In this document: positions 14,879-59,709 of the stretch, piece by piece
How the letters are laid out: the number at the start of each line of letters is the position of its first letter
Position numbering within the stretch: the stretch's first letter is position 1
Origin: Neoechinorhynchus agilis
Taxonomy: Eukaryota > Animalia > Acanthocephala
DNA length: 64,000 bases
Direction of reading: 5' to 3'
Assembly (NCBI GenBank): GCA_051530055.1
Contig: CM121342.1
Coordinates: 6,261,489-6,325,488 of the forward strand
Program-made: the position numbers and the translations under genes
Notes under the pieces: model-generated
Told to the model about the DNA's origin: nothing
Seen by the model: only the letters and a program-made list of their open reading frames with translations
Database searches by the model: none

Positions 14879-15825
14879 ATGGTTTACAGGCATATTAGCA
14901 CCAGTCAGACTAGTGCCACATATCTCTCAATGAACAATTCCGACACGCCAAGGAGGAATTGCTACAGCATTCCAGTAAAGATCGAATCTACACCTAGCGA
15001 AAAACGGTCAGTACCGATCGAAATATTGAGAGTCAATACCGAATGCGACAACAGCAAACTTGATAGTCGACCGGAATTCCGTTCAAGAACTTCTCTTAAC
15101 GAAAGTGGAGATGCTGGATTATGGTCGACCAATCATACGTCCTTGTTCCAGGTTAGACAAGAAACAGATCAGCAACGCACTCGCCCGGAAAATTAAAATA
15201 TTTTTTTATCGCTTTGTTGGTTTTTTTTGATTCCAAGAGCGGAATTATTTCATATTTGACAAAAAAATTTCGAGTCTTAATGAAACTTAACTCTTATATG
15301 ATTTTAATTTTACCGGCACTTGGCATTGCTTATCGATCACAATCAAGTGATCGGAACGCAAACAATCGGTATAATACGGTCTCCAGTCATCGATCTCCTA
15401 GCTACAGTCATCTTCCATCCATCGATGCTCCACTTTTCTCGAGACTTGACCCGTCAAAATGCGTCGAAAGCTCTAAGACTTTTCTGAAGAACTCTCACCT
15501 CACATCGGAATCACGAATAGGCAATCGAACATCAAGAGCTCCTCCTCAAGGATCTCTTTCACTTCATGTCAAAAGCACGGATATGTCGAAGGAAATGTGC
15601 TTGCGATCTACAAGCATTATCTCATCGGTTCTAGACCGTCAGTCGAGACAAACCAGCTACATGACACTTGCAAAAGAGATAAAATCTCAGCACGATGAAT
15701 ATTTTGGACCTTATTGGCACTGTATCGTCGGTCGACACTTTGCTGCTTTTGTTACTCACGATGCCGCAACTTTCATCTATTTGAACTGTGGACCAATCAG
15801 CATTTTGCTATTTAAAAGCACTTAA
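14879..15825 (+). CDS. Dynein light chain (LC8/DYNLL family) with long Ser/Arg-rich N-terminal extension; probably two exons, intron within ~15150-15345
   Basis: C-terminal KSTDMSKEM...IKSQHDEYFGPYWHCIVGRHFAAFVTHDAATFIYLNCGPISILLFKST matches LC8 (WHCIVGRNFGSYVTHE...FIYF...ILLFKS). Joining the upstream ORF 14879 is an inference. Confidence 0.85.
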
Positions 15826-19670: not shown

Positions 19671-21764
19671 TTAATCGCCGCTCTCCCGAGGTTTATCTGC
19701 CTCATCGGCAACAACATTCGAATCGATCACCTCCTCAATTGATTCACTCGTTTCCTCGGTTTCTCGTCGAGAGACATTCAAAGTCTCCGGTTGATCTATC
19801 ATTTCGCTGTCCAGGTTATTTTGCTGCATCTCAACTGAATGTTCATTGAAAGGTTCATTATTTACATTCAAGTTGTCCGGCAGCATAGGAGCAAAACCTG
19901 CGCAATTTTCATCGTTACCATTTAATTGGTCAGCGCAGGTCCCGCTCATGTTTAAGTTGGCAACTGATTGGATGCGCGATTGATTCAAACGACTTTCGCC
20001 GTCGATGCTGCTTGATTGGTTAGTGCCGGTTTCACCAATACGTAAAATCACGACGGATGAAATACTTAATTGATTGTGGGTAGATTCCATTGAATTTGAG
20101 TCGATTGAACCATTTAGAAATCGGTAATCAGGACCACCATTTATATATAATATTTCCTGCGACGTAGAAATTAAATCAGTACGATTTTCGCCGTCGATGC
20201 TTGATTGGTTAGCGCCGGTTCCACCAATACGTAAAATCACGACGGATGAAATACTTAATTGATTGTGGGTAGATTCCATTGAATTTGAGTCGAGGGAACC
20301 GTTTAGAAATCGGTAATCAGGACCACCATTTATATATAATATTTCCCGTCGCATAGAAGTAAAATCAGTACGATTTTCGTTGTCGATGCTGCTTGATTGG
20401 TTAGTGCCGGATCCACCAATACGAAAATTGGCGACTGATGAAACACTCCGTCGATTGCTGGATTCCGTATTTAAATATATTTGTTCGTTCGCTAGCGAAT
20501 GTATGCTCGAAGATTCCGTAAAAATCGGGCGCTGGACACTAATAACCGAATCGTCCTGGAGATTATTATTAGCATCCAGAATATCTTGAAGAAGAGAAGT
20601 TAATCCAATTTGACCTTCTTCGTTGCCACTTGACAAGTTTTCGCCGGTTCCAACTGCACCAAAGTCTTCAATTGATGAATCCCTCGATCGAATTGAAGGA
20701 TTTGCGTTCACAGTAACGCTATCGCTCGAAGATTCCGTAGAATTCGGGCGCTGGGCACTAATAATAGAATCGTATTGAGGACCGTTATTTACAACCAGAA
20801 TATCCTGCAGAAGGAATGTCAAACTCGTTTGACTTTCTTCATTTCCATTTGACTTGTTTTCGCCGGTTTCACCGGCGCTAAATTCTTTAACTGATGAATC
20901 CTTGGATCGAATTGGAGAATTCATGTTCACAGCAATGCTATCGCTCGAAGATTCCATACAATTCGGGCGCTGGGCACTAATAATAGAATCGTTCTGGGGA
21001 CCGTTATTTACACCCAGAATATCCTGAAGAAGAGAATTTAATCCAATTTGACTTTCTTCATTTCCATTTGACTTGTTTTCGCCGGTTTCACCGGCGATAA
21101 ATTCTTTAACTGATGAATCCTTGGATCGAATTGGAGGATTTGTGTTCACAGTAATGCAATAGTTTGTAGCTTCCTTAAAATTCGTGTCCTCGGCACTAAT
21201 AATGGAATCGTACTGGAGATTATTATTTGCACCCAGAATATCCTGAAGAAGAGAAGTTAATCCAGTTCGACTTCCTTCATTTCTACTTGACGGGGTTTCG
21301 CCGGTTTGAACTGCACCAAAGTCTTCAACTGATGAAACGTTTAAATGATGGGATAATCCCATGCTCGGCAAAATTTGATCAGTTGCCGCTGAATGAGGAG
21401 TTTTGTAAGAATCAGCAAGAGATTCGTAAGGTGTGCCATTATTGTAACTCATTATTTCTTGGAGCAATATAGTAAGATTTGTGGAAAAATCGCCAGTTGA
21501 TTGGTTATTTTTGATGGCATTGAATTCAGCGACAGGTGTAATCGTCGACGGACTCGGAGATTTATGTTCTTTAGTTCTTAAACAATCGTTTGTAGATTTA
21601 GATTCCATGGCAGATGAAACATCGTGATCGACAGTTACTTCAATATTAGGACTATTTTGCACATCGAGAATGTCTTGTAGAAGCGAGGTAAGATTATCAG
21701 ACTTTCTGGATTCATCTGAGTTGTCTCTGACATCCTCAGAATCGTTGGAATTATTGCGTTGCAT
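19671..21764 (-). CDS. Ser/Asn/Asp-rich, likely disordered repeat protein (~697 aa from ATG 21764) with recurring LTSLLQDILxVNN helix
   Basis: Long ORF with internal near-tandem repeats; pyrimidine-rich acceptor (ttttctag) 5 nt before the ATG. Confidence 0.75.
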   Translation of the reverse strand: MQRNNSNDSEDVRDNSDESRKSDNLTSLLQDILDVQNSPNIEVTVDHDVSSAMESKSTNDCLRTKEHKSPSPSTITPVAEFNAIKNNQSTGDFSTNLTILLQEIMSYNNGTPYESLADSYKTPHSAATDQILPSMGLSHHLNVSSVEDFGAVQTGETPSSRNEGSRTGLTSLLQDILGANNNLQYDSIISAEDTNFKEATNYCITVNTNPPIRSKDSSVKEFIAGETGENKSNGNEESQIGLNSLLQDILGVNNGPQNDSIISAQRPNCMESSSDSIAVNMNSPIRSKDSSVKEFSAGETGENKSNGNEESQTSLTFLLQDILVVNNGPQYDSIISAQRPNSTESSSDSVTVNANPSIRSRDSSIEDFGAVGTGENLSSGNEEGQIGLTSLLQDILDANNNLQDDSVISVQRPIFTESSSIHSLANEQIYLNTESSNRRSVSSVANFRIGGSGTNQSSSIDNENRTDFTSMRREILYINGGPDYRFLNGSLDSNSMESTHNQLSISSVVILRIGGTGANQSSIDGENRTDLISTSQEILYINGGPDYRFLNGSIDSNSMESTHNQLSISSVVILRIGETGTNQSSSIDGESRLNQSRIQSVANLNMSGTCADQLNGNDENCAGFAPMLPDNLNVNNEPFNEHSVEMQQNNLDSEMIDQPETLNVSRRETEETSESIEEVIDSNVVADEADKPRESGD

Positions 21765-23802
21765 ATTTCTAGAAAAAAAAAGCAAAGTTTAATTTATAAT
21801 TGAATGGAAGAGAAATTTAAGCCTAAATTTCGTATTAAATAGATTGCTTTACATATAACCGAGTGTATCGATCTGCGACCGTCACAAAAATACGAGGATG
21901 TTAACCGAACTTGTCAACCACGTCTTCTAAAAATAGAAGTGGAAGCGATGTGATTTATCTACAGTTGCGCAACACGGATGCAATCGAATATTATCGGCAA
22001 TTAAAAGGATTTAATCGTAGGTCGATAAGGTCTGAATTGATCACGTGGCTAATTTGTTCCGAGAAAATGAAAAAATCGATTTGGTAAGCGTTACAAAAAA
22101 TGTAATGTCTGAATTAGAATCCGGAACTGGTAAGCAAATTTTATCTTGTTTTAACGATTGCGATGTTCGCTGGAAACCACAAATTTTTATCCTCTAAGGA
22201 AAGTTGTCGCCTCCTTCATTCTACGGTCCAATTCTTTGTATAGTCTAAGGGCGGAGTAATCGAATGGCACGAAATCGTGGCCATATCTTAATTTAAAGAA
22301 TATTGTACAGGACGCATTACTAGGGAATGCTGTCAGCATTGTTTACCTTGACCTGCGGAATTTAAATCTTTTATTTAAACCATAAAGATTTTTATTACCG
22401 TTGTTCATTTGAACTGCAATTTTTGATGGTCACTGAAATCGCTGATCCATTTATACTTGTCGTTTTGGAAAACGTGAACGTTTACCTTTCTAATCTTTTA
22501 AGAAAATAAACCATAAAAGGCAAAGATTTGTAATGGACTAACATTTTTTAAGGGTTTGAAGATTGAATTGTTCATTTTCTATAATGAGGGTTCATTGAGA
22601 AAAAGATACATGGATTTATTATTTTTCGATACTTGAACAACCTTTATAAAGGCAAAAGATTGTGCCAAAGTATCGGATTCAATAAATAAATTAGTTCAAT
22701 TTTTTAAAGCCATGCAAAAAAAATATTTTTAGCTTTTAATGAATCATTTGAGAGAATTTAACACTCTTTATAATTGATTGATCGATGATTTGATCGGTAA
22801 TCTTGTTCGTAGATCGAACCCGAAAAATTCGCATCTTTAAAGGAAAACGATAAATTAGATGAGTAGAAATTTTCTAGTTGCGGACTCTATAAAATCTAAT
22901 AATGCATAACAATTTTTACTTTTTTTACAATTGTTTTATTAAATTTCACGCATTATTTCGTATTAACTATATATTTTCGATTTATATAAACGAACGTGTT
23001 TTTCTCTCGATAATTTAATTCTTTTCTTGATGCCAATTTTTCCGTCACCCGAGCTTTTATTTTGCTAACGACTTTTCACGTAATTTTGTTGAACTTAAAA
23101 AAACAAACCTTGTCTTATGTAATATTAAAAAAATTATGAAAATTTTTATGTTTTGACAAACTTGTTGCAAGGCGCAGCGATAATATTTAAAACGTTAATT
23201 TTTGTTTCATTAGTATTTTCGGATTTTGGAGTATAAACATAGGATTTCATTTCTAAAAAATCAATATAAAAATATTTAAAGTCAAGCTGGACGGTAACAT
23301 TTATTCTAAATTGAAGTGAGGCCTTTTTTCACGGCTGATTTTTTTAATAGACATCGGCCATTTATGTGGCTAAAGGAAGCGCATTATCCCTCCGGATTGT
23401 GCACTAAAAAATTCTTTATTTTATTAATTTTATAATCGACCAAAAGTGTCTTTAATTACATGATGGAAAGTTAATATAAAATCGTCACTAATTATTAGAT
23501 TTTGAACACATGAACCTCGTTCAAATCATTTCTCTTTTCCGCGCCATATTTCCAATTCTCCAACTTCGTCAGTATTTTTTATTCTCTATTCGTTATAAAT
23601 TTTGTGATATTTATTAAAAGATTTAATTATGATGGTGAACTGAAGGAAAAAATTATGAATATATTAATCAGAATTTTCGACCAATGCGTTGGTCTTCTTC
23701 AGTGATTGTTTTGCAAGTTTTTCCTAAATGAATATCCACACAATTTATTAAAAGATTTTCTATTCAAAAATGTCGATATGTGAGGAACTGGGGAATGTGA
23801 TT

Positions 23803-24257: not shown

Positions 24258-25214
24258 ATGAATAATGCAAATCGACAATATGAATTTCAATTTAACCAAC
24301 GTCCACAGATTCTATCTTTTCCAACAGGTTACAGGATGGCAACTCCAGTCGGTTACCAACACTACAATGCTAACCAAACTATGATTCCAGTTCGACCACA
24401 AATGGTATCACCAGGATTAAGGCCGATAAATTCTTGTATGATTGATATGACACCGTATTACTACATGCCGAATAATATTTCAGCTCAGCATTGGAATCCA
24501 TTAATGTCGAGAAGACCGTTGCCAGTTCAACAAAATGCTGACTATTGTCTCATCAATACGGCAGCCTTGGACCCGATTGAACAGTTTCAGAGGACACTAC
24601 CTCCAATTCCAGTGTCCAGAGTACAACAATTGGATCAAGGTTATTGTACAATCACTCCAATGGAAAGAATACGTCCTCATCTAGAATTGCATAATGTTCA
24701 ACAAATAAATCCAGTTTGGCTAAAGAGACAAATAACTCAGTCGGAATTATCCGGTGGCCAATTTGCTCCAAAGAGCTCATCTCCAGAGAAAAGGTCGAAA
24801 GTGTTCCACGAACCAAATTCCTCAAGGCTTCTAAAACAACAACTGCCAACAAAGAGAACGGTCAGTAGTCAGTTCGCCGAACTATCTCAATCACCAAATG
24901 ATTTTGAAGTTAAGAAAGCGAGGATTCATTCACAATCTCCAAGACAGTTAAAGCGTTCCGTCAAATCTGATCTGACAGCACAATCCGAGTTCATGGAAAA
25001 GAAAATAGACGATTCGAATCGCCGAATTGATGCTCAAAATGCCAAAAACTCAAAAAAAGGAGTTATCAGCAATAGACCGTGTGGCTTTGGTCTTACGGTT
25101 GATGAACTTAACGAAGAATTTGTGAATATGTCCAGCGAGAGCAGGATGCATTTTGAATGGGTCGACGATTTTTTAGGTGGAGGAGGCTGCTATTCCCCAC
25201 TAGATTATTATTGA
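24258..25214 (+). CDS. Unknown 318-aa protein; Pro/Gln/Asn/Met-rich N-terminus, Ser/Lys-rich C-terminus
   Basis: Long ATG ORF in AT-rich surroundings, acceptor-like ttttag 11 nt upstream; no domain recognised. Confidence 0.65.
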   Translation: MNNANRQYEFQFNQRPQILSFPTGYRMATPVGYQHYNANQTMIPVRPQMVSPGLRPINSCMIDMTPYYYMPNNISAQHWNPLMSRRPLPVQQNADYCLINTAALDPIEQFQRTLPPIPVSRVQQLDQGYCTITPMERIRPHLELHNVQQINPVWLKRQITQSELSGGQFAPKSSSPEKRSKVFHEPNSSRLLKQQLPTKRTVSSQFAELSQSPNDFEVKKARIHSQSPRQLKRSVKSDLTAQSEFMEKKIDDSNRRIDAQNAKNSKKGVISNRPCGFGLTVDELNEEFVNMSSESRMHFEWVDDFLGGGGCYSPLDYY

Positions 25215-25856: not shown

Positions 25857-27888
25857 GGGTGACGGAAAAATTGGCATAACTTAAAACAGCAAATATTCTT
25901 TTTTTAAAGAAAAGAATTAAATTATCAAGAGAAAAACACGTCCGTTTATATAAATCGAAAATATATAGTTAATACGAAATAATGCGTGAAATTTAATAAA
26001 AAAAATGCAAAAGTATTCCTTAGAGGATAAAAATTTGTGGTTTCCAGCGAACATCGCAATCGTTAAAACAAGATAAAATTTGCTTACCAGTTCCGGATTC
26101 TAATTCAGACATTACATTTTTTGTAACGCTTACCAAATCGATTTTTTCATTTTCTCGGAACAAATTAGCCACGTGATCAATTCAGACCTTATCGACCTAC
26201 GATTAAATCCTTTTAATTGCCGATAATATTCGATTGCATCCGTGTTGCGCAACTGTAGATAAATCACATCGCTTCCACTTCTATTTTTAGAAGACGTGGT
26301 TGACAAGTTCGGTTAACATCCTCGTATTTTTGTGACGGTCGCAGATCGATACACTCGGTTATATGTAAAGCAATCTATTTAATACGAAATTTAGGCTTAA
26401 ATTTCTCTTCCATTCAATTATAAATTAAACTTTGCTTTTTTTTCTAGAAATATGCAACGCAATAATTCCAACGATTCTGAGGATGTCAGAGACAACTCAG
26501 ATGAATCCAGAAAGTCTGATAATCTTACCTCGCTTCTACAAGACATTCTCGATGTGCAAAATAGTCCTAATATTGAAGTAACTGTCGATCACGATGTTTC
26601 ATCTGCCATGGAATCTAAATCTACAAACGATTGTTTAAGAACTAAAGAACATAAATCTCCGAGTCCGTCGACGATTACACCTGTCGCTGAATTCAATGCC
26701 ATCAAAAATAACCAATCAACTGGCGATTTTTCCACAAATCTTACTATATTGCTCCAAGAAATAATGAGTTACAATAATGGCACACCTTACGAATCTCTTG
26801 CTGATTCTTACAAAACTCCTCATTCAGCGGCAACTGATCAAATTTTGCCGAGCATGGAATTATCCCATCATTTAAACGTTTCATCAGTTGAAGACTTTGG
26901 TGCAGTTCAAACCGGCGAAACCCCGTCAAGTAGAAATGAAGGAAGTCAAACGAGTTTGACATTCCTTCTTCAGGATATTCTGATTGTAAATAACGGTCCC
27001 CAGAACGATTCGGTTATTCGTGCCCAGCGCCCGAATTCTACGGAATCTTCGAGCGATCGCATTACTGTGAACGCAAATCCTTCAATTCGATCGAGGGATT
27101 CATCAGTTAAAGAATTTAGCGCCTATGAAACCGGCGAAACCCCGTCAAATATCAACGAAGAAAGTCAAATTTGATTAACTTCTTCAGAATATTCTGGGTG
27201 TAAATAACGGTCCTCAGTACGAATCACTGTAGGGACTTTTATATTAAATTTCCATCATGTAATTAAAGACACTTTTGGTCGATTGTAAAATTAATAAAAT
27301 AAGAATTTTTTAGTGCACGAATTGATATCAGCATAAATTTAGCCGCTATATTTGTTAAAATTGTAAAAAATGGGAAAACGAAAAGTAACAAATGCGGACC
27401 CAATGATTTAAATTCATAATTATCGAAAGCTTAAATTCGAAAAATAATAGCCAGTTTTTTGTTGCAATTTTGTATTGAAACATAAAATAGTCAATCTTTT
27501 AGCGCCGACAATTAGAATTGAAGGCTAGGCATGCGATCTTAGAATCCGGAGGGATAATGCGCTTCCTTTAGCCACATAAATGGCCGATGTCTATTAAAGA
27601 AATCAGCCGTGAAAAAAGGCCTCACTTCAATTTAGAATAAATGTTACCGTCCAGCTTGACTTTAAATATTTTTATATTGATTTTTAAAAATGAAATCCTA
27701 TTATTATACTCCAAAATCCGAAAATACTAATGAAACAAAAATTAACGTTTTAAATATTATCGCTGCGCCTTGCAACAAGTTTGTCAAAACATAAAAATTT
27801 TCATAATTTTTTTAATATTACATAAGACAAGGTTTGTTTTTTTAAGTTCAACAAAATTACGTGAAAAGTCGTTAGCAAAATAAAAGCT
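25857..27888 (+). repeat. Inverted, rearranged duplicate of ~20750-23490
   Basis: 25857-26012 = rc 23050-22925; 26016-~27224 = rc 22201 into the coding region, with internal deletion; 27230-27320 = rc ~23490-23400; 27545-27888 = rc ~23395-23052. Confidence 0.9.
26452..27174 (+). pseudogene. Truncated paralogue (240 aa) of the 19671-21764 repeat protein
   Basis: First ~165 aa nearly identical; internal repeats deleted; early stop at caaatttga, with remnants of the next repeat out of frame. Confidence 0.75.
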
Positions 27889-49195: not shown

Positions 49196-49580
49196 GCTGC
49201 AAGTCGTCGTCATCAACTTACTACAAGACTTATTGAAGCTTTTTAAGAATAATCCATGGTTATTATTGATTTCAGTTTCAATTAGCGATGTTTGATTCAG
49301 AAATAGATTGTTGAAAATTTTCGACTTGTGGATGGATTTGACTGATCTCTTTACGTATATCTGGAAGAATTGTGACTTATAGGAAAGGAAAACCGATTGG
49401 TCCTTGTGGTTAACAAATTAATGTATTTTACTTGAATGATTTCAGTGAAGTGCTCTTAATTGAGTTCTTGGTTTATTTGCGTATCGTCTTATTTGTGTTT
49501 TATTTCTAAATCTGTTTTTGAAAACGTTTTTCTTGGATTCGACTGAAATGTTGAAGATTTTGTACGGGCGGGCACTGTGA

Positions 49581-49802
49581 TCACCACACATCTCCAAATC
49601 GAGTCATCCCGAAGGATTTTCTCTCTCGATGGTTTCTTAAATTAATTATCAAAAGAAAATCCATCGGAATGATTGATTTAGAGATGTGTTATGATTATAA
49701 TCCGCCCCGGATTGAAAATATTCCATGTGAGATATTTTCTATCCTAGGGATTATGGTCACCACACATCTCCAAATCGAGTCATCCCGAAGGATTTTCTCT
49801 CT
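49581..49802. repeat. Direct repeat pair (~50 bp) with partial inverted copy between
   Basis: tcaccacacatctccaaatcgagtcatcccgaaggattttctctctc at ~49582 and ~49757; cccgaaggattttctct also at ~37199. Confidence 0.7.
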
Positions 49803-49871
49803 CTTCATAAGATTATAAATCGGAGTTATAAAATTTTATGCCATCTAATATTTTTTTTATTCTAATCTTAG

Positions 49872-52800
49872 ATGAATGAACGGATGAGGGTGATAGATGG
49901 CTCTCAAATGGAGAGCGGTGGACAGATTTTAAGGATGAGTGCAGTTTTCAGCTGCCTTTTGCGAATTCCATTAAAAATATATAATATTCGTAAAAAACGA
50001 TCAAAACCTGGTCTAATGGCGCAGCATCTCGCTGGGCTCGAACTTATTGCTCAAATGTCTAACTGTGACCTTATAAACGCATCACTCGGTTCGATGATGA
50101 TTCAGATCGTCCCGAGAGATGGATCTAGTGAACGGGGTGGTGATTTTGCTAAAAACACTCACACCGCTGGATCGGTTGGACTTTTATGCGTGGCGGATGG
50201 AGATGTTGACGGCTTATCTTGAAAATCTATTCTAATCTTTTCTTATCGCAGATACTTATTTCGTATTTTTTGCCGGTATGTTAGATGTTTTGGTTTTCGT
50301 CCAATAGAAAACGTTTTGTTTGAAGACGTTTTCTATTGGACGGAGACCAAAACAACAAATTCGTAAAATATTTCACGATATTTAATGATCAATTTAAAAA
50401 TTTGTTGTTTTGGTTTTCGTCCAATAAAAGGCGTTTTGTTCGAAGACGTTTTCTATTGGACGGAGACCGAAACAACAAATTCGTAAATTATTTTATCATG
50501 GTATTTAATGATCAATTTAAAAATTTGTTGTTTTGGTTTTCGTCCAATAAAAGGCGTTTTGTTCGAAGACGTTTTCTATTGGACGGAACAAACAACAAGT
50601 AAAATTTTATCATGGTATTTAATGATCAATTTACAAATTTATTGTTTTGGTTTTCGTCCAATAGAAAGCGTTTTGTTTGAAGACGTTTTCTATTGGACGG
50701 AGACAAAAGCAACAAATTCGTAAAATATTTCACGATATTTAATGATCAATTTAAAAATTTGTTGTTTTGGTTTTGGTCCAATAAAAGGCGTTTTGTTTGA
50801 AGACGTTTTCTATTGGACGGAGACCGAAACAACAAATTCGTAAATTATTTTATCATGATGTTTAATGATCAATTTAAAAATTTATTGTTTTTGTCTTCGT
50901 CCAATAGAAAACGTTTTATGTGAAGAACTTTGCCTCTGAATAAAGCATTTTAAGTGATGATGAATCCGACGAAGCTCAAACCATTTTTAAACTTTATCGG
51001 ACGAATACTAAAATGGCATTTTTTTTCAAATTGGACATTCTTGGATATTAATTCGTCTCTCTCTCGTCTACATTTCATCATTCTAAATGATATTTGAATC
51101 CTTTCAAGTTCTAAAAATTCAATATATTAATTTCTATAAGGTTTAGACATCTTTATCATTCGTCTCTATTCGCACCGTTTACTTCAATCTGTTGTACCCT
51201 ATGCGTTATTGGGATGCCAAAGGCCTGTATCTCTTCACCTTGTTGGTGGCACAAACGCCGCCTATGCTCCACATATTGATTGGCTCCAAAACGTACTCTT
51301 CTATAACCTCAAAATGTTTTACAACGCTACAATTAATTTCAATATCTTGAACCGAGGCTGCTTTCCACAAGGAGGAGGACGCGTACAAGTGGATATTATG
51401 CCAATTATAGGAAGACCATTGCAGCCAATCAGCGTCGGGATTGTGGGGAATGAGATTAGAAATGTTGTTGTTCAATCGTGGGGATGCGGTCGAGTACCTC
51501 CTCAGCTTGTAAGAAGACTAGTAGATGCTTGCAAGAAGGAACTGGTTCAAGAAGGAGTGGTTAGAACTAATGAAATCGAGTCCAGTTGGACTAAAGACAC
51601 AAAACATATTCCGTCTTCTGGTTGTGGAGCAATTGTATACGCTGACAATACTCTAGGCCACAGATTTGGTGTTGATCTACTTTTATAGGAGAAGTCGTGA
51701 AAAGTTGTTTATTTTATGTGAAAATTTTCGATAATTTCATTCGGAATTTGTTTAGACATCCTTTTTTTCTCCTATCAAATAAAATTGTTGACATTTTTGA
51801 TCTACTTTTATAGGAGAAGTCATGAAAAGTTCTTTATTTTATGTGAAAATTTTCGATAATTTCATTCGGAATTTGTTTAGACATCCCTTTTTTTCTCCTA
51901 TCAAATAAAATTGTTAACATTTTTGATCTACTTTTATAGGAGAAGTCGTGAAAGGTTGTTTATTTTATGTGAAAATTTTCGATAATTTCATTCGAAATTT
52001 GTTTAGACATCCTTTTTTTCTCCTATCAAATAAAATTGTTAACATTTTTGATCTACTTTTATAGGAGAAGTGAAAAGTTATTTATTTTATGTGAAAATTT
52101 TCGATAATTTCATTCGAAATTTGTTTAGACATCTTTTTTTTCTCCTATCAAATAAAATTGTTGACATTTTTGATCTACTTTTGTAGAAGTGAAAAGTTGT
52201 TTATTTTATGTGAAAATTTTCGATAATTTCATTCGAAATTTGTTTAGACATCCTTTTTTTCTCCTATCAAATAAAATTGTTAACATTTTTGATCTACTTT
52301 TATAGGAGAAGTGAAAAGTTATTTATTTTATGTGAAAATTTTCGATAATTTCATTCGAAATTTGTTTAGACATCTTTTTTTCTCCTATCAAATAAAATTG
52401 TTGACATTTTTGATCTACTTTTATAGGAGAAGTCTGAAAAGTTGTTTATTTTATGTGAAAATTTTCGATAATTTCATTCGAAATTTGTTTAGACATCCCT
52501 TTTTTTCTCCTATCAAATAAAATTGTTGACATTTTTGATCTACTTTTATAGGAGAAGTTGAAAAGTTCTTTATTTTATGTGAAAATTTTCGATAATTTCA
52601 TTCGAAATTTGTTTAGACATCCCTTTTTTCTCCTATCAAATAAAATTGTTAACATTTTTGATCTACTTTTGTAGAAGTGAATAGTCGTTCATTTTATGTG
52701 AAAATTTTCGATAATTTCATTCGAAATTTGTTTAGACATCTTTTTTTCTCCTATCAAATAAAATTGTTGACATTTTTGATCTACTTTTATAGGAGAAGTG

Positions 52801-53229
52801 AAAAGTTATTTATTTTATGTGAAAATTTTCGATAATTTCATTCGAAATTTGTTTAGACATCCCTTTTTTTGTCCTACCAAATAAAATTGTTAACATTTAA
52901 ACTTTTAAATTTTTGTGACTTGTGCTACACACAGAGACGCATCGTTAGAACGAGCTGGCAATACAATGGCACGAGCATTTAAGGAATGTGCGATTACTGG
53001 AGTTGATAGGAACCTAGAGGATAATCTTATTGTTTTTATGGCTCTAGCGGATGGAATATCAGAAATGACTTGTTGTGCTAATCCGACCCTCCATACATTG
53101 ACTGCTATTTACGTTGCTGAGGAACTCACGGGTGCGAAATTCGATTTACGCCCAGTCAACACGGATTCACAGAATTCCGAATTGTGCAAAATCGTCTGTT
53201 GCGGAAGTGGATTTATGAACCGGATTTGA
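49872..53229 (+). CDS. RTCA: RNA 3'-terminal phosphate cyclase; three coding blocks ~49872-50186, ~51182-51685, ~52930-53229
   Basis: IDGSQMESGGQILR, PGLMAQHL, TAGSVGLL, GGTNAAYAPHID, RGCFPQGGG, DRNLEDNLIVFMALA and PTLHT (catalytic His). Confidence 0.92.
50285..50935. repeat. Satellite H, ~114-123 bp unit, ~5.5 copies, inside RTCA interruption 1
   Basis: cgtccaata (or variant) at 50298, 50418, 50541, 50655, 50775, 50898. Confidence 0.93.
51674..52900. repeat. Satellite I, ~118-126 bp unit, ~10 copies, inside RTCA interruption 2
   Basis: gatctactttt at 51674, 51799, 51925, 52050, 52172, 52291, 52413, 52538, 52660, 52778. Confidence 0.95.
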
Positions 53230-53889: not shown

Positions 53890-55389
53890 CTATTCAACAT
53901 CCTCAACGTCAAGAAACGATGAGCGGTCTATTTTTTCCCCGGCATCATCGTTACTTTGATATAAAGAAGATCTTCTTAGACTAGTTTCAAAATTTTCACT
54001 TATTTCACTAATTCTCGCCGAAATGCGTTTTGAATAAGAAAATCTTTGAGACTCATGAACTTCAGTGACGGGTTGAGGTGTTTCTATTGATTCCCTGATG
54101 GATTCCATCAATACTGACGATATTTTCGATTGTCTTTCCTCAAGCGATGTCGTCCATAATTCGTATTGACCTGCAAAAAACATAGGACTGCTCAAACACA
54201 TCATCCCTGGTAATGATTGTCCTACTAATAATTTTAAAGCGGATAATCCAGCGGTGCTGATCATCGAAAAGGTTAGTTTTTCACTAAGGCGAACTGCGGA
54301 TGTCATTGTATGACCTCCTGCGAGAACAGTAAACACTCCTTGACTCGTTGCAAGACTTAAATTCATTAAGATCTGTTTTGTAGATTCAGAGAACTTTTCT
54401 GTTTCGAAAACACCGACCGGTCCATTCCAAAAGACAGTTTTCGCTCTTTTAATCGCATTTTCCACGGTTGCAACAAACATTGGACCAACATCCATGGCTG
54501 CAAATCCATCACTGACTCCATTTCGTACGTCTTCCACGATTATATCTTCCCGTTCAATTCTCATATTAAGACATACGAGATCTCTAGGAAGATAAATAGG
54601 AATATTCTTCTCCTTTGCTTTTTTTAATATCGTGATAACTTCCTTCTCTCCTTCTGGGTCATATAATGTCTGCTCGATCTTTGTCTTTAGCAAAACATGA
54701 AGAAAAGGCATAGCTAAAGCACCACCGATCGCAAGTTCGTCAACGTAATCTAGTAAATCAGACATCAAATTTAATTTCTCAAACTTCACTCCTCCAATAA
54801 TTGCCAAAAATGGTCTTTTGGGAGCATTTCTGAGTGATCTAAAATCTCCCAATTCCTTTTCCATCAATAATCCCATCACGTTTAAAAGTGCACCAACTCC
54901 CACGACTGAACTATGCTCTTTGTGTACCACACTAAAAGCATCGTTAACAAATATATCACAAAGATTCGTTAATTTAGAACGAAAATCCGCAACTGTTTCA
55001 CCATCTTCAGTCTCTTCCTTAAAAAATCTTATATTATCCAGAACAACTATTTCTCCAGTTCTATAGGCAGTCAAAGTGTCCGTTATGCAATTCCAATCGA
55101 TACTATCAATGAATCTTACACGCTTATGGATCTTTTTTGAAAGCAATTCAGCGGCGTATAAAAGGCTTAATCTGTCGTCTTTACCTTCAGGATTACCCAT
55201 GTGACTCACGATAACTATATATTTTGGTTTGGTTGCCGATATGAGGTTAATTGTTGGCAAAATCTGATCTATCCTAGCTTCAAGCGTCGCACCCGACTGA
55301 TCATTCAAATCTACTCGAACCATAACTCGTGCTTCTTTAAGATCTAAGTTCCTTACACTAAATGCCTCGAACATTAAACCACTGCTCAT
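53890..55389 (-). CDS. PGK: Divergent intronless phosphoglycerate kinase with ~100-aa C-terminal extension
   Basis: RVDLN, SHMGNP, DNIRF, FVNDAF, MDVGP, VFWNGPVGVFE. Confidence 0.93.
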   Translation of the reverse strand: MSSGLMFEAFSVRNLDLKEARVMVRVDLNDQSGATLEARIDQILPTINLISATKPKYIVIVSHMGNPEGKDDRLSLLYAAELLSKKIHKRVRFIDSIDWNCITDTLTAYRTGEIVVLDNIRFFKEETEDGETVADFRSKLTNLCDIFVNDAFSVVHKEHSSVVGVGALLNVMGLLMEKELGDFRSLRNAPKRPFLAIIGGVKFEKLNLMSDLLDYVDELAIGGALAMPFLHVLLKTKIEQTLYDPEGEKEVITILKKAKEKNIPIYLPRDLVCLNMRIEREDIIVEDVRNGVSDGFAAMDVGPMFVATVENAIKRAKTVFWNGPVGVFETEKFSESTKQILMNLSLATSQGVFTVLAGGHTMTSAVRLSEKLTFSMISTAGLSALKLLVGQSLPGMMCLSSPMFFAGQYELWTTSLEERQSKISSVLMESIRESIETPQPVTEVHESQRFSYSKRISARISEISENFETSLRRSSLYQSNDDAGEKIDRSSFLDVEDVE

Positions 55390-55459: not shown

Positions 55460-56950
55460 ACCCGTTATCCACAAAATTCTAAATGTTCAATCGCCTTCAA
55501 ATACGGATTTTTTCCTGAACATTTTAAGGTGCTTTCATTTCTCTTACAATTTTATACCTTAAAATCTGAGCGCTTTTTTCTTCGCTTCCACAGGGATCAC
55601 CTCTTTCGCCCATTTTATTCTGCCACTCAATTTATCGTGAGGAATTGTAAAGTGTATGCTGATTATTTATCAGCAGTGATTAAAGAAACTAATTATCTTA
55701 GAAGCAAGAGCGAAACTAGTGGCCTTGCTGAGGTTTTTTCAATCAATATCTTCCACAAATGGGTCTTTCTTTGAACCACAAGAAGACCAAATTTTTAATC
55801 AAATCTAAATCTACTCTTCCAGATTTATTTTCGAACGAAAAATGGGTGTTTTATTTCTTACTTCAAATTTTCGACGCCTTGCGTCTGCCCTCCTCTGATT
55901 CCTTTTCAGATAACCGAAGAAAAGCTTCCTGACGAAAACAAGACCAAATTTTTAATCAAATCTAAATCTACTCTTCCAGATTTATTATCGAACGAAAAAT
56001 GGGTGTTTTATTTCTTACTTCAAATTTTCGACGCCTTGCGTCTGCCCTCCTCTGATTCCTTTTCAGATAACCGAAGAAAAGCTTCCTGACGAAAACAAGA
56101 CCAAATTTTTAATCAAATCTAAATCTACTCTTCCAGATTTATTATCGAACGAAAAATGGGTGTTTTACTTACTTCAAATTTTCGACGCCTTGCGTCTGCC
56201 CTCCTCTGATTCCTTTTCAGATAACCGAAGAAAAGCTTCCTGACGAAAACAAGACCAAATTTTTAATCAAATCTAAATCTACTCTTCCAGATTTATTATC
56301 GAACGAAAAATGGGTGTTTTATTTCTTACTTCAAATTTTCGACGCCTTGCGTCTGCCCTCCTCTGATTCCTTTTCAGATAACCGAAGAAAAGCTTCCTGA
56401 CGAAAACAAGACCAAATTTTTAATCAAATCTAAATCTACTCTTCCAGATTTATTATCGAACGAAAAATGGGTGTTTTATTTCTTACTTCAAATTTTCGAC
56501 GCCTTGCGTCTGCCCTCCTCTGATTCCTTTTCAGATAACCGAAGAAAAGCTTCCTGACGAAAACAAGACCAAATTTTTAATCAAATCTAAATCTACTCTT
56601 CCAGATTTATTATCGAACGAAAAATGGGTGTTTTATTTCTTACTTCAAATTTTCGACGCCTTGCGTCTGCCCTCCTCTGATTCCTTTTCAGATAACCGAA
56701 GAAAAGCTTCCTGACGAAGACGCAAGCCGTCGAAAATTTGAAGTAAGAAATAAAAAAACACCCATTTTTCGTTCGATAATAAATCTGGAATAAAACATGA
56801 GGATGTTGGGAAAAGAGGCTTTCCATAATATTAAATCTACTCTAGGTAGGAGGCGGATTAGAGAGTATGTGAAAGATTTTTTCAATCTATATTTTTATCC
56901 GGTCTACAACAAGATGGATAATCCTAGGACACACGATTACCGGCAACCTA
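55460..56950 (+). mobile_element. Decayed non-LTR reverse transcriptase remnant, interrupted by satellite E
   Basis: Frameshifted RT motifs in the right order: PQGSPLSPILF (55588-55620), VYADY (YADD-like), MGLSLNHKKTK (from 55759). Confidence 0.8.
55785..56718. repeat. Satellite E, 157 bp unit, ~6 copies
   Basis: gaccaaatttttaatc at 55785, 55942, 56099, 56253, 56410, 56567. Confidence 0.95.
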
Positions 56951-58731: not shown

Positions 58732-59709
58732 TTAACAACGACTTCCAGTTTGCTTATGAAATTTAGTCCTTCGATTCTGGAAAAAGACCTTGACCGAATT
58801 GAATTTAAGGTTGAGTGCAATAGCCAATTGCTCGATTTGCAAAGTGGTTGGTCTTTTTCGACGCATAAAATAATTTTCCAATGCCTCTTTTTCAAATTTT
58901 GTGAAATTATGCCTTTTCCATCGCCGGTCCTTTCCGGATGTATTGGTATCTTGAACCGGTGTTTGAAATTGGGATTGAGAATTCATGATTTGTTGTTGTT
59001 GTTGACCGTCAATGGAGCCTCTAATTACAGGTATTTGTGCAGAGTATTGCTCTTGTGGTTGAACATTTGTGATATAATTCTGTTGAACCGGAAAACTAGC
59101 AGCGTAATTGTTAGGAACTTGCATATTGTTTGAATAATGTAAATCCATCTGAATATTGCCTTGGCCATATTGATTTTGCATTTGTTGATGCACTTGAGGT
59201 TGTGGAACATTATACTGATAATATTGGCCATTATCAGCGTAATATTGCCAATTTTCCTGAGGTTGCTGTTCGTAGTATACCATTATCTGTCCGTTTTGAT
59301 CCATAATTGGATTCGCAGGTTCCTGGTTAGTCGTCCATTGATTTAAACCTTCCACATTGTTTTCAAATCCGTGATTTTGATCCATAATTGGATTCGCAGG
59401 TTCCTGGTTAGTCGTCCATTGATTTAAACCTTCCACATTGTTTTCAAATCCGTGATTTTGATCCATAATTCGATTCGCAGGTTCCTGGTTAGTCGTCCAT
59501 TGATTTAAATCTTCCAAATTGTTTTCAAATCCGTGATTTTGATCCATAATTCGATTCGTAGGTTCCTGGTTAGTCGTCCATTGATTTATATCTTCCAAAT
59601 TGCCGTTAAATCCGCCGTTTCGATCCGTAGCTTCCTGGTTATTCATCCATTGATTAAAATCACCCGAAAGATCGTCAAATCCGCTGTTTTGTTGATTTTG
59701 ATGGTGCAT
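58732..59709 (-). CDS. Intronless divergent homeobox protein with Gln/Asn-rich N-terminus and 27-aa tandem repeats
   Basis: C-terminal homeodomain RRWKRHNFTKFEKEALENYF...QIEQLAIALNLKFNSVKVFFQNRRTKFHK; 81-bp repeats at 59298, 59379, 59460, 59541. Confidence 0.9.
   Translation of the reverse strand: MHHQNQQNSGFDDLSGDFNQWMNNQEATDRNGGFNGNLEDINQWTTNQEPTNRIMDQNHGFENNLEDLNQWTTNQEPANRIMDQNHGFENNVEGLNQWTTNQEPANPIMDQNHGFENNVEGLNQWTTNQEPANPIMDQNGQIMVYYEQQPQENWQYYADNGQYYQYNVPQPQVHQQMQNQYGQGNIQMDLHYSNNMQVPNNYAASFPVQQNYITNVQPQEQYSAQIPVIRGSIDGQQQQQIMNSQSQFQTPVQDTNTSGKDRRWKRHNFTKFEKEALENYFMRRKRPTTLQIEQLAIALNLKFNSVKVFFQNRRTKFHKQTGSRC

Follow-up and report, generated by a model that had tools for sequence, protein, structure and literature searches.

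How can a gene stay in use when its coding sequence is cut by two inserts, neither of which is bounded by ordinary splice sites? This question is raised by the RtcA gene of the acanthocephalan Neoechinorhynchus agilis, which is located at 49872-53229 on the forward strand of a 64,000-nucleotide window of contig CM121342.1 (GCA_051530055.1). The window is the whole stretch of DNA that was analyzed, and positions refer to it unless another scale is named. The genome of this species is 46 Mb in size and was annotated with BRAKER 2.1.5 from mRNA-seq. An earlier sequence-only reading of the locus proposed that RtcA is split by two non-GT-AG introns, which are defined by base pairing between their own ends. 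The analysis described here found three open, conserved coding pieces (E1, E2, and E3) that form an intact RtcA frame, two inserts (I1 and I2) of exactly the lengths that restore this frame upon removal, insert ends that are paired in a shared register, and no usable canonical splice sites (Table 1). The earlier interpretation was partly supported. The explanation favored here, tentatively and at somewhat less than an even balance of probability, is that I1 and I2 are insertion-derived introns of a still-functional RtcA gene, which would be removed from RNA with the aid of a terminal hairpin.

An open RtcA frame in three pieces

Exact removal of 995 nt and 1244 nt, the lengths calculated in the sequence-only reading, restored a frame of 1119 coding nucleotides (372 codons) containing no stop and no frameshift, and gave a gap-free RtcA alignment and the top Pfam scores. 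The three-piece protein matches RTC (PF01137) with 206.6 bits over profile positions 2-220 of 221 and RTC_insert (PF05189) with 25.7 bits, and thus possesses the full RTC domain, the insert domain, and the motifs expected of an RtcA protein. In an alignment with seven RtcA proteins from insects, fish, spider, amoeba, and archaea, it retains 53 of the 58 columns that are invariant among the others. E2 retains 15 of 18 such columns, which implies that selection has acted on it and that it has to be part of the mRNA, and its identity of 0.30, vs. 0.37 among the other proteins, makes it slightly more diverged than expected. Translation, Pfam, and this eight-sequence alignment confirmed that two non-GT-AG interruptions cut an otherwise intact frame.

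Homology sets the positions of both joins. The PDB alignments of RtcA, which involve archaeal and Escherichia coli structures, give the spacing TAGSxxLV|LQxxxP for the first join, exactly that of the proposed E1|E2 join, and the eight-sequence alignment crosses both joins without gaps, with the invariant residues L272 and R275 flanking the second. The predicted spacings, TAGSVGLL|LQSVVPY and RFGVDLLL|HRDASLERAG, were borne out by the PDB alignments in the first case and by the gap-free alignment in both. The conserved histidine of TLHTLTA is found in E3, and a stop codon (TAG at 51686) lies directly 3' of the E2 reading. Both upstream pieces end in ACTTTTA followed by T (50180-50187 and 51679-51686), as had been noticed earlier.

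The borders themselves can slide. The direct repeat TTTA, also readable as TA, stands on both sides of I1 (50183-50186 and 51178-51181) and allows five equivalent border positions; E1 ends at 50185 when the intron is taken to start with AT. The direct repeat at the borders of I2 is a single nucleotide (A), and no target-site duplication is present. A shift of +1 gives GC..AC ends for I1 and AG..AC ends for I2, the latter changing H274 to Y, in agreement with the sequence-only reading, which did not remark that sliding I2 by -1 (51685-52928) gives AT...AC termini and leaves the protein unchanged. No GT/GC...AG pair occurs at the homology-required joins of I1 and I2, no GT-AG, GC-AG, or AT-AC pair yields the required join at I1, and no version of I1 that is both in frame and correctly spaced has AT...AC ends.

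Joins that are in frame and stop-free do exist nearby. For I1 they are a canonical-type GC-AG pair (50188-51146), which adds 12 amino acids, and an AT-AC pair (50197-51182), which adds 3; for I2 a GT-AG pair (51669-52936) gives a product 8 residues shorter. With the I1 alternatives the RTC match falls to 191.3 or 196.5 bits, and among the I2 joins tested only 51685|52930 retains the RTC_insert match. The sequence-only reading noted no suitably placed AG at the first junction and an in-frame TAG in the nearest GT-AG join of the second; for I2 this has to be qualified by the GT-AG join given above, which is free of stops and scores worse. A further candidate for I2, NTLG|HRDAS over the 6-nt repeat CACAGA (AG-AC, 51662-52932), which the LGKRG motif made attractive, was rejected: it loses the RTC_insert match, and the alignment spacing contradicts it.

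A fish RTCA gene (Salarias fasciatus) has ten GT-AG introns in 367 codons, the nearest being at TAG^SV, 12-16 nt upstream of I1, and at LGKR^G, 7-8 nt downstream of I2. Proximity of this order is expected about 10% of the time for that number of introns, and none of the positions is common to both genes, which favors gain of I1 and I2 by insertion as their probable origin. The supplements of the N. agilis genome paper contain no RtcA entry. Two observations concern the region preceding the gene. Within 49540-49810, two copies of a 50-nt segment (GGTCACCACACATCTCCAAATCGAGTCATCCCGAAGG...) run in the same direction and enclose a third that is partly inverted, and the RtcA start codon is preceded by the acceptor-like TTCTAATCTTAG, which suggests an intron in the 5' untranslated region or a trans-splice site.

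Table 1. Coding pieces, interruptions, and introns of the RtcA locus and its surroundings (TRF, tandem repeat identified with Tandem Repeats Finder).
Feature	Position	Strand	Size	Description
E1, RtcA coding piece	49872..50186	+	105 codons	C-terminal end ...TAGSVGLL; translation, PDB RtcA matches (E 1e-12), within annotated gene P0001
I1, interruption	50187..51181	+	995 nt	Borders homology-defined, slidable
I1 5' stem arm GCGGATGGAGATG	50193..50205	+		Pairs with 51161-51173
I1 tandem array	50286..50926	+	5.3 units of 120 nt	Perfect 32-bp hairpin in each unit; TRF
I1 3' stem arm CGTCTCTATTCGC	51161..51173	+		Partner of 50193-50205
E2, RtcA coding piece	51182..51685	+	168 codons	LQSVVPY...RFGVDLLL, bulk of insert domain; translation, PDB matches
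I2 tandem array	51672..52898	+	10 units of ~125 nt	TRF
I2, interruption	51686..52929	+	1244 nt	Homology-defined borders
I2 5' stem arm AAGTCGTGAAAA	51692..51703	+		Pairs with 52910-52921
I2 3' stem arm TTTTTGTGACTT	52910..52921	+		Single copy
E3, RtcA coding piece	52930..53229	+	99 codons + TGA	N-terminal HRDASLERAG; translation, alignment
P0001 single intron, public BRAKER model	50186..52928	+		AT...AC; E1 joined to E3, 204 aa; P0001 sequence equals the E1+E3 join
Canonical intron	15152-15237		86 nt	GT-AG
Canonical intron	26013-26447		435 nt	GT-AG
Canonical introns, HAP1_N gene			46-50 nt	Several; GT-AG, homology-defined exons
Canonical introns, AP-2 gene				Two; GT-AG
Canonical intron, MFS (SLC17-like) gene	~1930-2401 of locus L007	-	~470 nt	GTAAGT...TTCCAG

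Pairing between the ends of the inserts

Stem 1, formed by gcggatggagatg and cgtctctattcgc, contains 13 contiguous base pairs, and stem 2, formed by aagtcgtgaaaa and tttttgtgactt, contains 12, with three G-U pairs in each. Both stems start at position +7 of the interruption and end at -9, leaving 6 + 8 = 14 unpaired nucleotides outside; lengths, G-U pairs, and common register are all as claimed in the sequence-only reading. As DNA inverted repeats, the arms of I1, which are located 6-8 nt inside its ends, are identical at 10 of 13 positions, and those of I2 at 9 of 12. Arms that are only 75-77% identical as DNA are thus completely paired as sense RNA. The pairing is restricted to the sense strand, the best antisense runs being 5 and 7, and transition-type mismatches in the extended arms favor G-U over A-C by 7 to 1 (hand count; one-sided p ~0.035, with some ascertainment bias). 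The proposal that the G-U pairs reflect selection at the RNA level is in line with both observations.

Stems of this kind are rare by chance. Random genomic pairs at these spacings gave a stem of at least 13 in 0.12% of trials and of at least 12 in 0.48%, and composition-preserving shuffles of the real ends, which are purine-rich and pyrimidine-rich, did so in 0.5-0.8% (stem 1) and 1.3-4.4% (stem 2). When the same stagger was also required of the shuffles, the frequency was ~0.1% or less, and the occurrence of two stems in one register is jointly far beyond chance. Folding of the intron ends supported a strong stem 1 (-26.6 kcal/mol, p 0.002) and left stem 2 unexceptional (-15.1 kcal/mol, p 0.17). 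A scan anchored on the motif CTTTTAT and requiring a complement downstream of it revealed no further case in the window, blastn of parts of I1 and I2 against the window, a small sample, returned only self-matches, and Rfam gave no match on it.

Each insert is largely occupied by a tandem array. The I1 unit hairpin folds with -53.3 kcal/mol (z -10.4); the five tandem hairpins of this satellite could be a small-RNA source or a foldback element. The I2 array begins inside E2, so that its unit includes 14 nt from the end of E2 along with the 5' junction and the region of the 5' arm, and this inclusion of exon sequence indicates that the array arose in place. Among the ten copies of the exon end, the 5' junction is intact in eight and altered from TA to TG in two. 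Three of the ten donor copies can pair with the single 3' arm over all 12 bp, the repeats being copies 2 and 3 of the array (arms starting at 51817 and 51943), and the stem alone therefore cannot select the I2 donor. The units show a mean pairwise divergence of 3.3% and indel events at 1.4% per site. A coding frame without lesions despite in-place array growth and divergence is moderate evidence for function, given that arrays mutate faster. The whole window is filled with minisatellite arrays, whose periods are 90-470 nt and which occur even inside long open reading frames (ORFs), and the satellites inside I1 and I2 can thus be ascribed to a general habit of this genome.

A third, independent interruption was found ~15 kb away and just outside the window, in a TF AP-2 gene on the minus strand (positions 15-2522 of locus L006, ~67188-69695 on the window scale). 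The annotated protein, 125 amino acids in length, covers Pfam profile positions 75-196 only, and profile positions 45-73 (AKSKEGGKKLREELISAGVYVQTGRRR) are encoded ~830 nt upstream of the annotated part. The join ...GRRR|MCPM... gives one contiguous match to positions 45-196, with 97.7 bits vs. 63.7. This interruption has no in-frame GT-AG join, and its sole in-frame canonical-type join, GC-AG (L006 1210-2047), deletes the conserved RRR. The 4-nt direct repeat AGAA lies at its borders, the flanks of the insert read GTAG/GAAG, and its ends form a perfect 14-bp inverted repeat, AACTATAATTCTCT (L006 1219-1232) and AGAGAATTATAGTT (2030-2043). A tandem array, here of five 265-nt units, has multiplied the left arm together with the end of the upstream exon, as is the case in I2. 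The arms are terminal, with 4 unpaired nucleotides in total, the length of the repeat, compared with 14 in each of I1 and I2. By its architecture, the AP-2 insert looks like a younger member of the I1/I2 kind of element, and the three interruptions exhibit three different terminal dinucleotide pairs. None of the folds contained a bulge-helix-bulge, the tRNA endonuclease substrate in which two 3-nt bulges with the cut sites border a 4-bp helix; they consist of an exon-exon helix, one internal loop with both junctions, and then the intron helix. The exon-exon helices, present in all three folds, are not significant, as 6-bp runs are common by chance.

Introns with paired ends have precedents in two protist groups. 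The introners of the dinoflagellate Amoebophrya are MITE-like (resembling miniature inverted-repeat transposable elements), encode no transposase, lack fixed terminal dinucleotides, make up >60% of introns, and form repeated families that are spread over the genome; inverted repeats of 8-20 nt join their ends, and direct repeats of 3-5 nt overlap their borders (PMC7789003). The stems of 13 and 12 bp with G-U pairs in I1 and I2 and the perfect 14 bp of the AP-2 insert fall within the former range, and TTTA of I1 and AGAA of AP-2 within the latter, while the single A of I2 does not. Unlike introners, the inserts described here are a minority among canonical introns, have no second copy in 64 kb, and are ~1 kb long and satellite-filled. 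Nonconventional introns of Euglena also need paired ends for excision and have slidable borders; in their motif, N3-CDG...CH'G-N5-6|R, the spacers measure 3 and 5-6 nt, the core is CAG/CTG, and the acceptor exon starts with a purine (PMC12501133). I1 and I2 share with them a 3' spacer that is two nucleotides longer than the 5' spacer (+k/-(k+2); +7 pairs with -9), but have spacers of 6 and 8 nt, no CAG/CTG core, and an acceptor exon starting with C, or with A if slid. In the larvacean Fritillaria borealis, non-canonical introns, which are thought to be transposon-derived, account for 95% of the total and mostly have AG-A(N) termini, such as AG-AC and AG-AT (PMC13326754, PMC7789003). Its likeness lies in the metazoan host and the non-GT-AG interruptions; here, canonical introns dominate, and AG-AC fits I2 only with H274Y and does not fit I1. 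The parallels to larvacean and euglenid introns drawn in the sequence-only reading stand as analogies only: the host is neither a larvacean nor a euglenid, its other introns in the neighborhood are canonical, and the Euglena motif is absent, although the stagger is shared.

Spliceosomal and transposon-based systems offer other comparisons. I2, taken as 51685-52928, and the annotated 50186-52928 intron have AT...AC termini, as U2-type and U12-type AT-AC introns do, whereas I1, in the in-frame form with the required spacing, does not. The 5' ends of I1 and I2, ATGCGTGG and ATAGGAGA, do not fit the U12-type 5' consensus ATATCCTT, and the last 40 nt of neither contain a U12 branch box (TCCTTAAC, placed 10-26 nt from the 3' end). 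The donors ACUUUU|AUGCGU (I1) and ACUUUU|AUAGGA (I2) fit A-U-R-N-G, which corresponds to the GTWAGT donors of the neighborhood with G1 changed to A. Compared with elements bounded by terminal inverted repeats (TIRs), including MITEs, AP-2 has perfect terminal arms and GTAG/GAAG, I1 imperfect arms and TTTA/TA, and I2 imperfect arms and no duplication; the multiple copies typical of such elements were not found by blastn in the 64-kb window, a small sample. I1 is TA-bounded like a ciliate-type internal eliminated sequence, and I2 is not. Tc1 in Caenorhabditis elegans and Ds in maize are TIR elements that insert into coding sequence with TA or a short duplication and can be spliced out at cryptic, often non-consensus sites close to the ends of the element, for which TIR pairing has been proposed to help; their removal is mostly imprecise and known from recent mutant alleles. 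I1 and I2, in contrast, need precise removal, and their state looks old, with diverged arms and arrays expanded in place. In yeast and teleosts, long introns can be spliced with the aid of a zipper stem, in which complementary end segments shorten the effective length and GT-AG is retained; I1 and I2 share the end pairing in an unusually long insert but are non-GT-AG. Literature searches on acanthocephalan introns and splice sites yielded nothing relevant.

Competing explanations for the inserts

According to the favored explanation, I1 and I2 would have originated as short MITE-like or foldback-like insertions with inverted repeats at their ends, and would later have been inflated by the minisatellite amplification that pervades the genome. 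The gene would not have been disabled, because the inserts would be excised from the pre-mRNA. The 12-13 bp terminal helix would bring together the ends of a ~1 kb insert in a genome whose usual introns measure 45-470 nt, and cleavage and ligation would take place outside the helix, at non-consensus sites located at a constant distance from it. Both donors would be A-first (ACUUUU|AU-R-N-G), with I2 using a U2-like AT-AC pair and I1 ending in a non-standard dinucleotide. Paired-end introns as such are known from Amoebophrya (PMC7789003) and Euglena (PMC12501133).

The public annotation bears on this explanation. P0001, a 204-residue N. agilis hypothetical protein from a gene spanning 49872-53229, is the best database match and is 100% identical over the aligned part to the three-piece protein, and the boundaries of its single intron, AT (50186) and AC (52928), coincide with the outer two predicted boundaries of I1 and I2. 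AUGUSTUS has an option for AT-AC splice sites, and within BRAKER it by default takes them only at sites hinted by RNA-seq. For this reason, RNA-seq reads that open an AT-AC gap at the outer two boundaries probably exist, although the evidence for them is indirect. Junctions of the E1|E2 type with other dinucleotides being filtered before gene prediction would explain the dropped E2. The ends of the E1-E3 intron form no comparable stem (-12.7 kcal/mol), and its sites look like sequence-type AT-AC sites. Together with the three I2 donor copies that pair fully, this stemless join leaves the designation 'structure-defined', proposed in the sequence-only reading, undemonstrated.

Several findings weigh against the favored explanation. 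The public model (...GSVGLL|HRDAS...) skips E2, a collection of 5.8 billion proteins contains none with E2, and the AT donor at 50186 combined with either of the nearby AC acceptors (51175 and 51182) results in a frameshift. The TTTA/TA bracket of I1 resembles a target-site duplication or transposon footprint, and the TIR and 4-nt repeat of AP-2 are what a plain transposon insertion leaves. Mis-splicing is to be expected from an I2 array with ten donor copies, three of which pair fully, the duplex energy of stem 2 is unremarkable, neither I1 nor I2 occupies a fish RTCA intron position, and heavy gene loss has been reported for the acanthocephalan lineage.

The strongest rival builds on these findings. 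RtcA, and AP-2 as well, would be on the way to being lost from a reduced parasite genome. RtcA would be an insertional pseudogene or null allele, in which TIR-bounded repeats in the coding sequence, like that in AP-2, are not productively removed and the E1-E3 AT-AC join is cryptic splicing toward a nonfunctional product of 204 amino acids. This alternative, unlikely on balance, deserves serious weight, because removing any insertion restores frame and spacing automatically. The flanks of I1, the perfect 14-bp TIRs and 4-nt GTAG/GAAG flank of AP-2, the occurrence of one-inverted-arm arrays in intergenic DNA (55783-56790) of an array-filled window, the skipping of E2 by the only RNA-guided model, the slightly raised divergence of E2, and the gene loss of the lineage are likewise compatible with it. 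A disabled gene would not be expected to keep 372 codons free of stops and frameshifts despite two inserts, in-place array growth, and divergence, nor arms that differ as DNA and pair fully as sense RNA. That two unrelated inserts have the identical +7/-9 register and share an 8-mer, ACTTTTAT, also counts against it, as do the lack of another copy of either insert in 64 kb and of a target-site duplication at I2. At the opposite extreme, and in keeping with the 'structure-defined' introns of the sequence-only reading, the helix alone might set cuts at a fixed stagger, irrespective of the terminal dinucleotides, in a non-spliceosomal excision, either Euglena-like or by an endonuclease with RtcB-type ligation. 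The stagger of the Euglena code, the three different dinucleotide pairs of the three interruptions, and the existence of such introns in Amoebophrya (PMC7789003) point in this direction. The idea is nevertheless improbable: the Euglena motif is absent, the offset sum of AP-2 is 4 instead of 14, decoy donors in the I2 array pair equally well, the E1-E3 join is stemless, no bulge-helix-bulge appears in the folds, and both donors fit A-U-R-N-G, like A-first spliceosomal donors.

Two further alternatives dispense with unusual RNA processing. The nearby canonical or semi-canonical sites (GC-AG or AT-AC for I1, GT-AG for I2) could be spliced in the ordinary manner to give a variant protein, since every one of these joins is in frame and stop-free, TTTAG at 51146 is preceded by a pyrimidine-rich stretch, and the GT-AG join would render the whole I2 array intronic. 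These joins lower the RTC score by 10-15 bits or lose the RTC_insert match, add or remove residues inside gap-free conserved blocks, and were not built by BRAKER, which permits such site types when hinted, making this a very improbable solution. The slimmest chance is assigned to removal at the DNA level, by precise somatic excision as of internal eliminated sequences or through an insertion polymorphism with insert-free expressed alleles. The combination of TIR and short direct repeat would suit this mechanism, as would intact exons, and the E1-E3 join would represent an alternative, larger excision. However, pairing that relies on G-U points to RNA, the I2 repeat is only 1 nt, and an E1-E2 read from an insert-free allele could not create an AT donor hint at 50186. 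To our knowledge, there is no report of programmed elimination in Acanthocephala, a topic that was not itself searched.

Surroundings of RtcA and implications

The genes neighboring RtcA, encoding a kinase, PGK, and a homeobox protein, are mostly intronless, and the introns nearby, of which at least 10 were counted, are ordinary GT-AG introns with GTWAGT-like donors and T-rich ...YAG acceptors. In the MFS gene intron, a 15-nt inverted repeat (87%) is located in the interior, far from either end, a useful control that shows internal repeats in ordinary introns too. An intergenic array at 55783-56790, upstream of PGK, consists of six 157-nt units and is built like I2 and the AP-2 insert: every unit contains the left arm of an inverted repeat of ~73 nt (97% complementary), and the right arm is present once at the far end. 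PGK itself (53890-55389) is intronless and 499 amino acids in length, with a C-terminus ~80 residues longer than that of typical PGK. The tandem arrays at 19989-21336 (periods of 189 and 219 nt, in a 697-residue protein) and 59294-59689 (81 and 69 nt, in the homeobox protein) are in-frame coding repeats. A 106-nt inverted repeat (95%; 22923-23028 and 25907-26012) brackets 2.9 kb containing a gene with a 318-aa ORF (24258-25214; no Pfam match). The first exon of the following gene, only 8 nt long, lies in the right arm of this repeat, and the arm stops precisely where intron 26013-26447 begins with GT.

Introns that disregard GT-AG and have paired ends as their mark have been described in euglenids, in a parasitic dinoflagellate, and in larvacean tunicates. 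If I1 and I2 are removed from RNA, RtcA would represent a case that arose independently in a parasite of the Spiralia whose genome is 46 Mb in size, a lineage for which no such case was found in the literature and a new one that is within experimental reach. The locus would then bear on the conversion of transposon insertions into introns and on structure-based splice-site choice. If, on the other hand, the inserts are disabling, it would be a clean snapshot of gene loss through repeat insertion.

Both affected genes are truncated in the public annotation, RtcA to 204 of 372 amino acids and AP-2 to 125, and the BUSCO completeness of N. agilis is 47% for the genome vs. 55% for the transcriptome. 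On these grounds, claims of gene loss in Acanthocephala need to be re-checked with methods that are agnostic to splice sites. It is conceivable, though rather doubtful, that the interruptions belong to a genome-wide class in N. agilis, and perhaps in Acanthocephala, of elements bounded by inverted repeats and short direct repeats, which would be removed precisely and without GT-AG, either at the RNA level under the guidance of structure or through excision from DNA. Annotation pipelines would truncate gene models at such elements, and part of the reported gene loss would be an annotation artefact. Removal of I1 and I2 from RNA would, in any case, have consequences for the annotation of acanthocephalan genomes.

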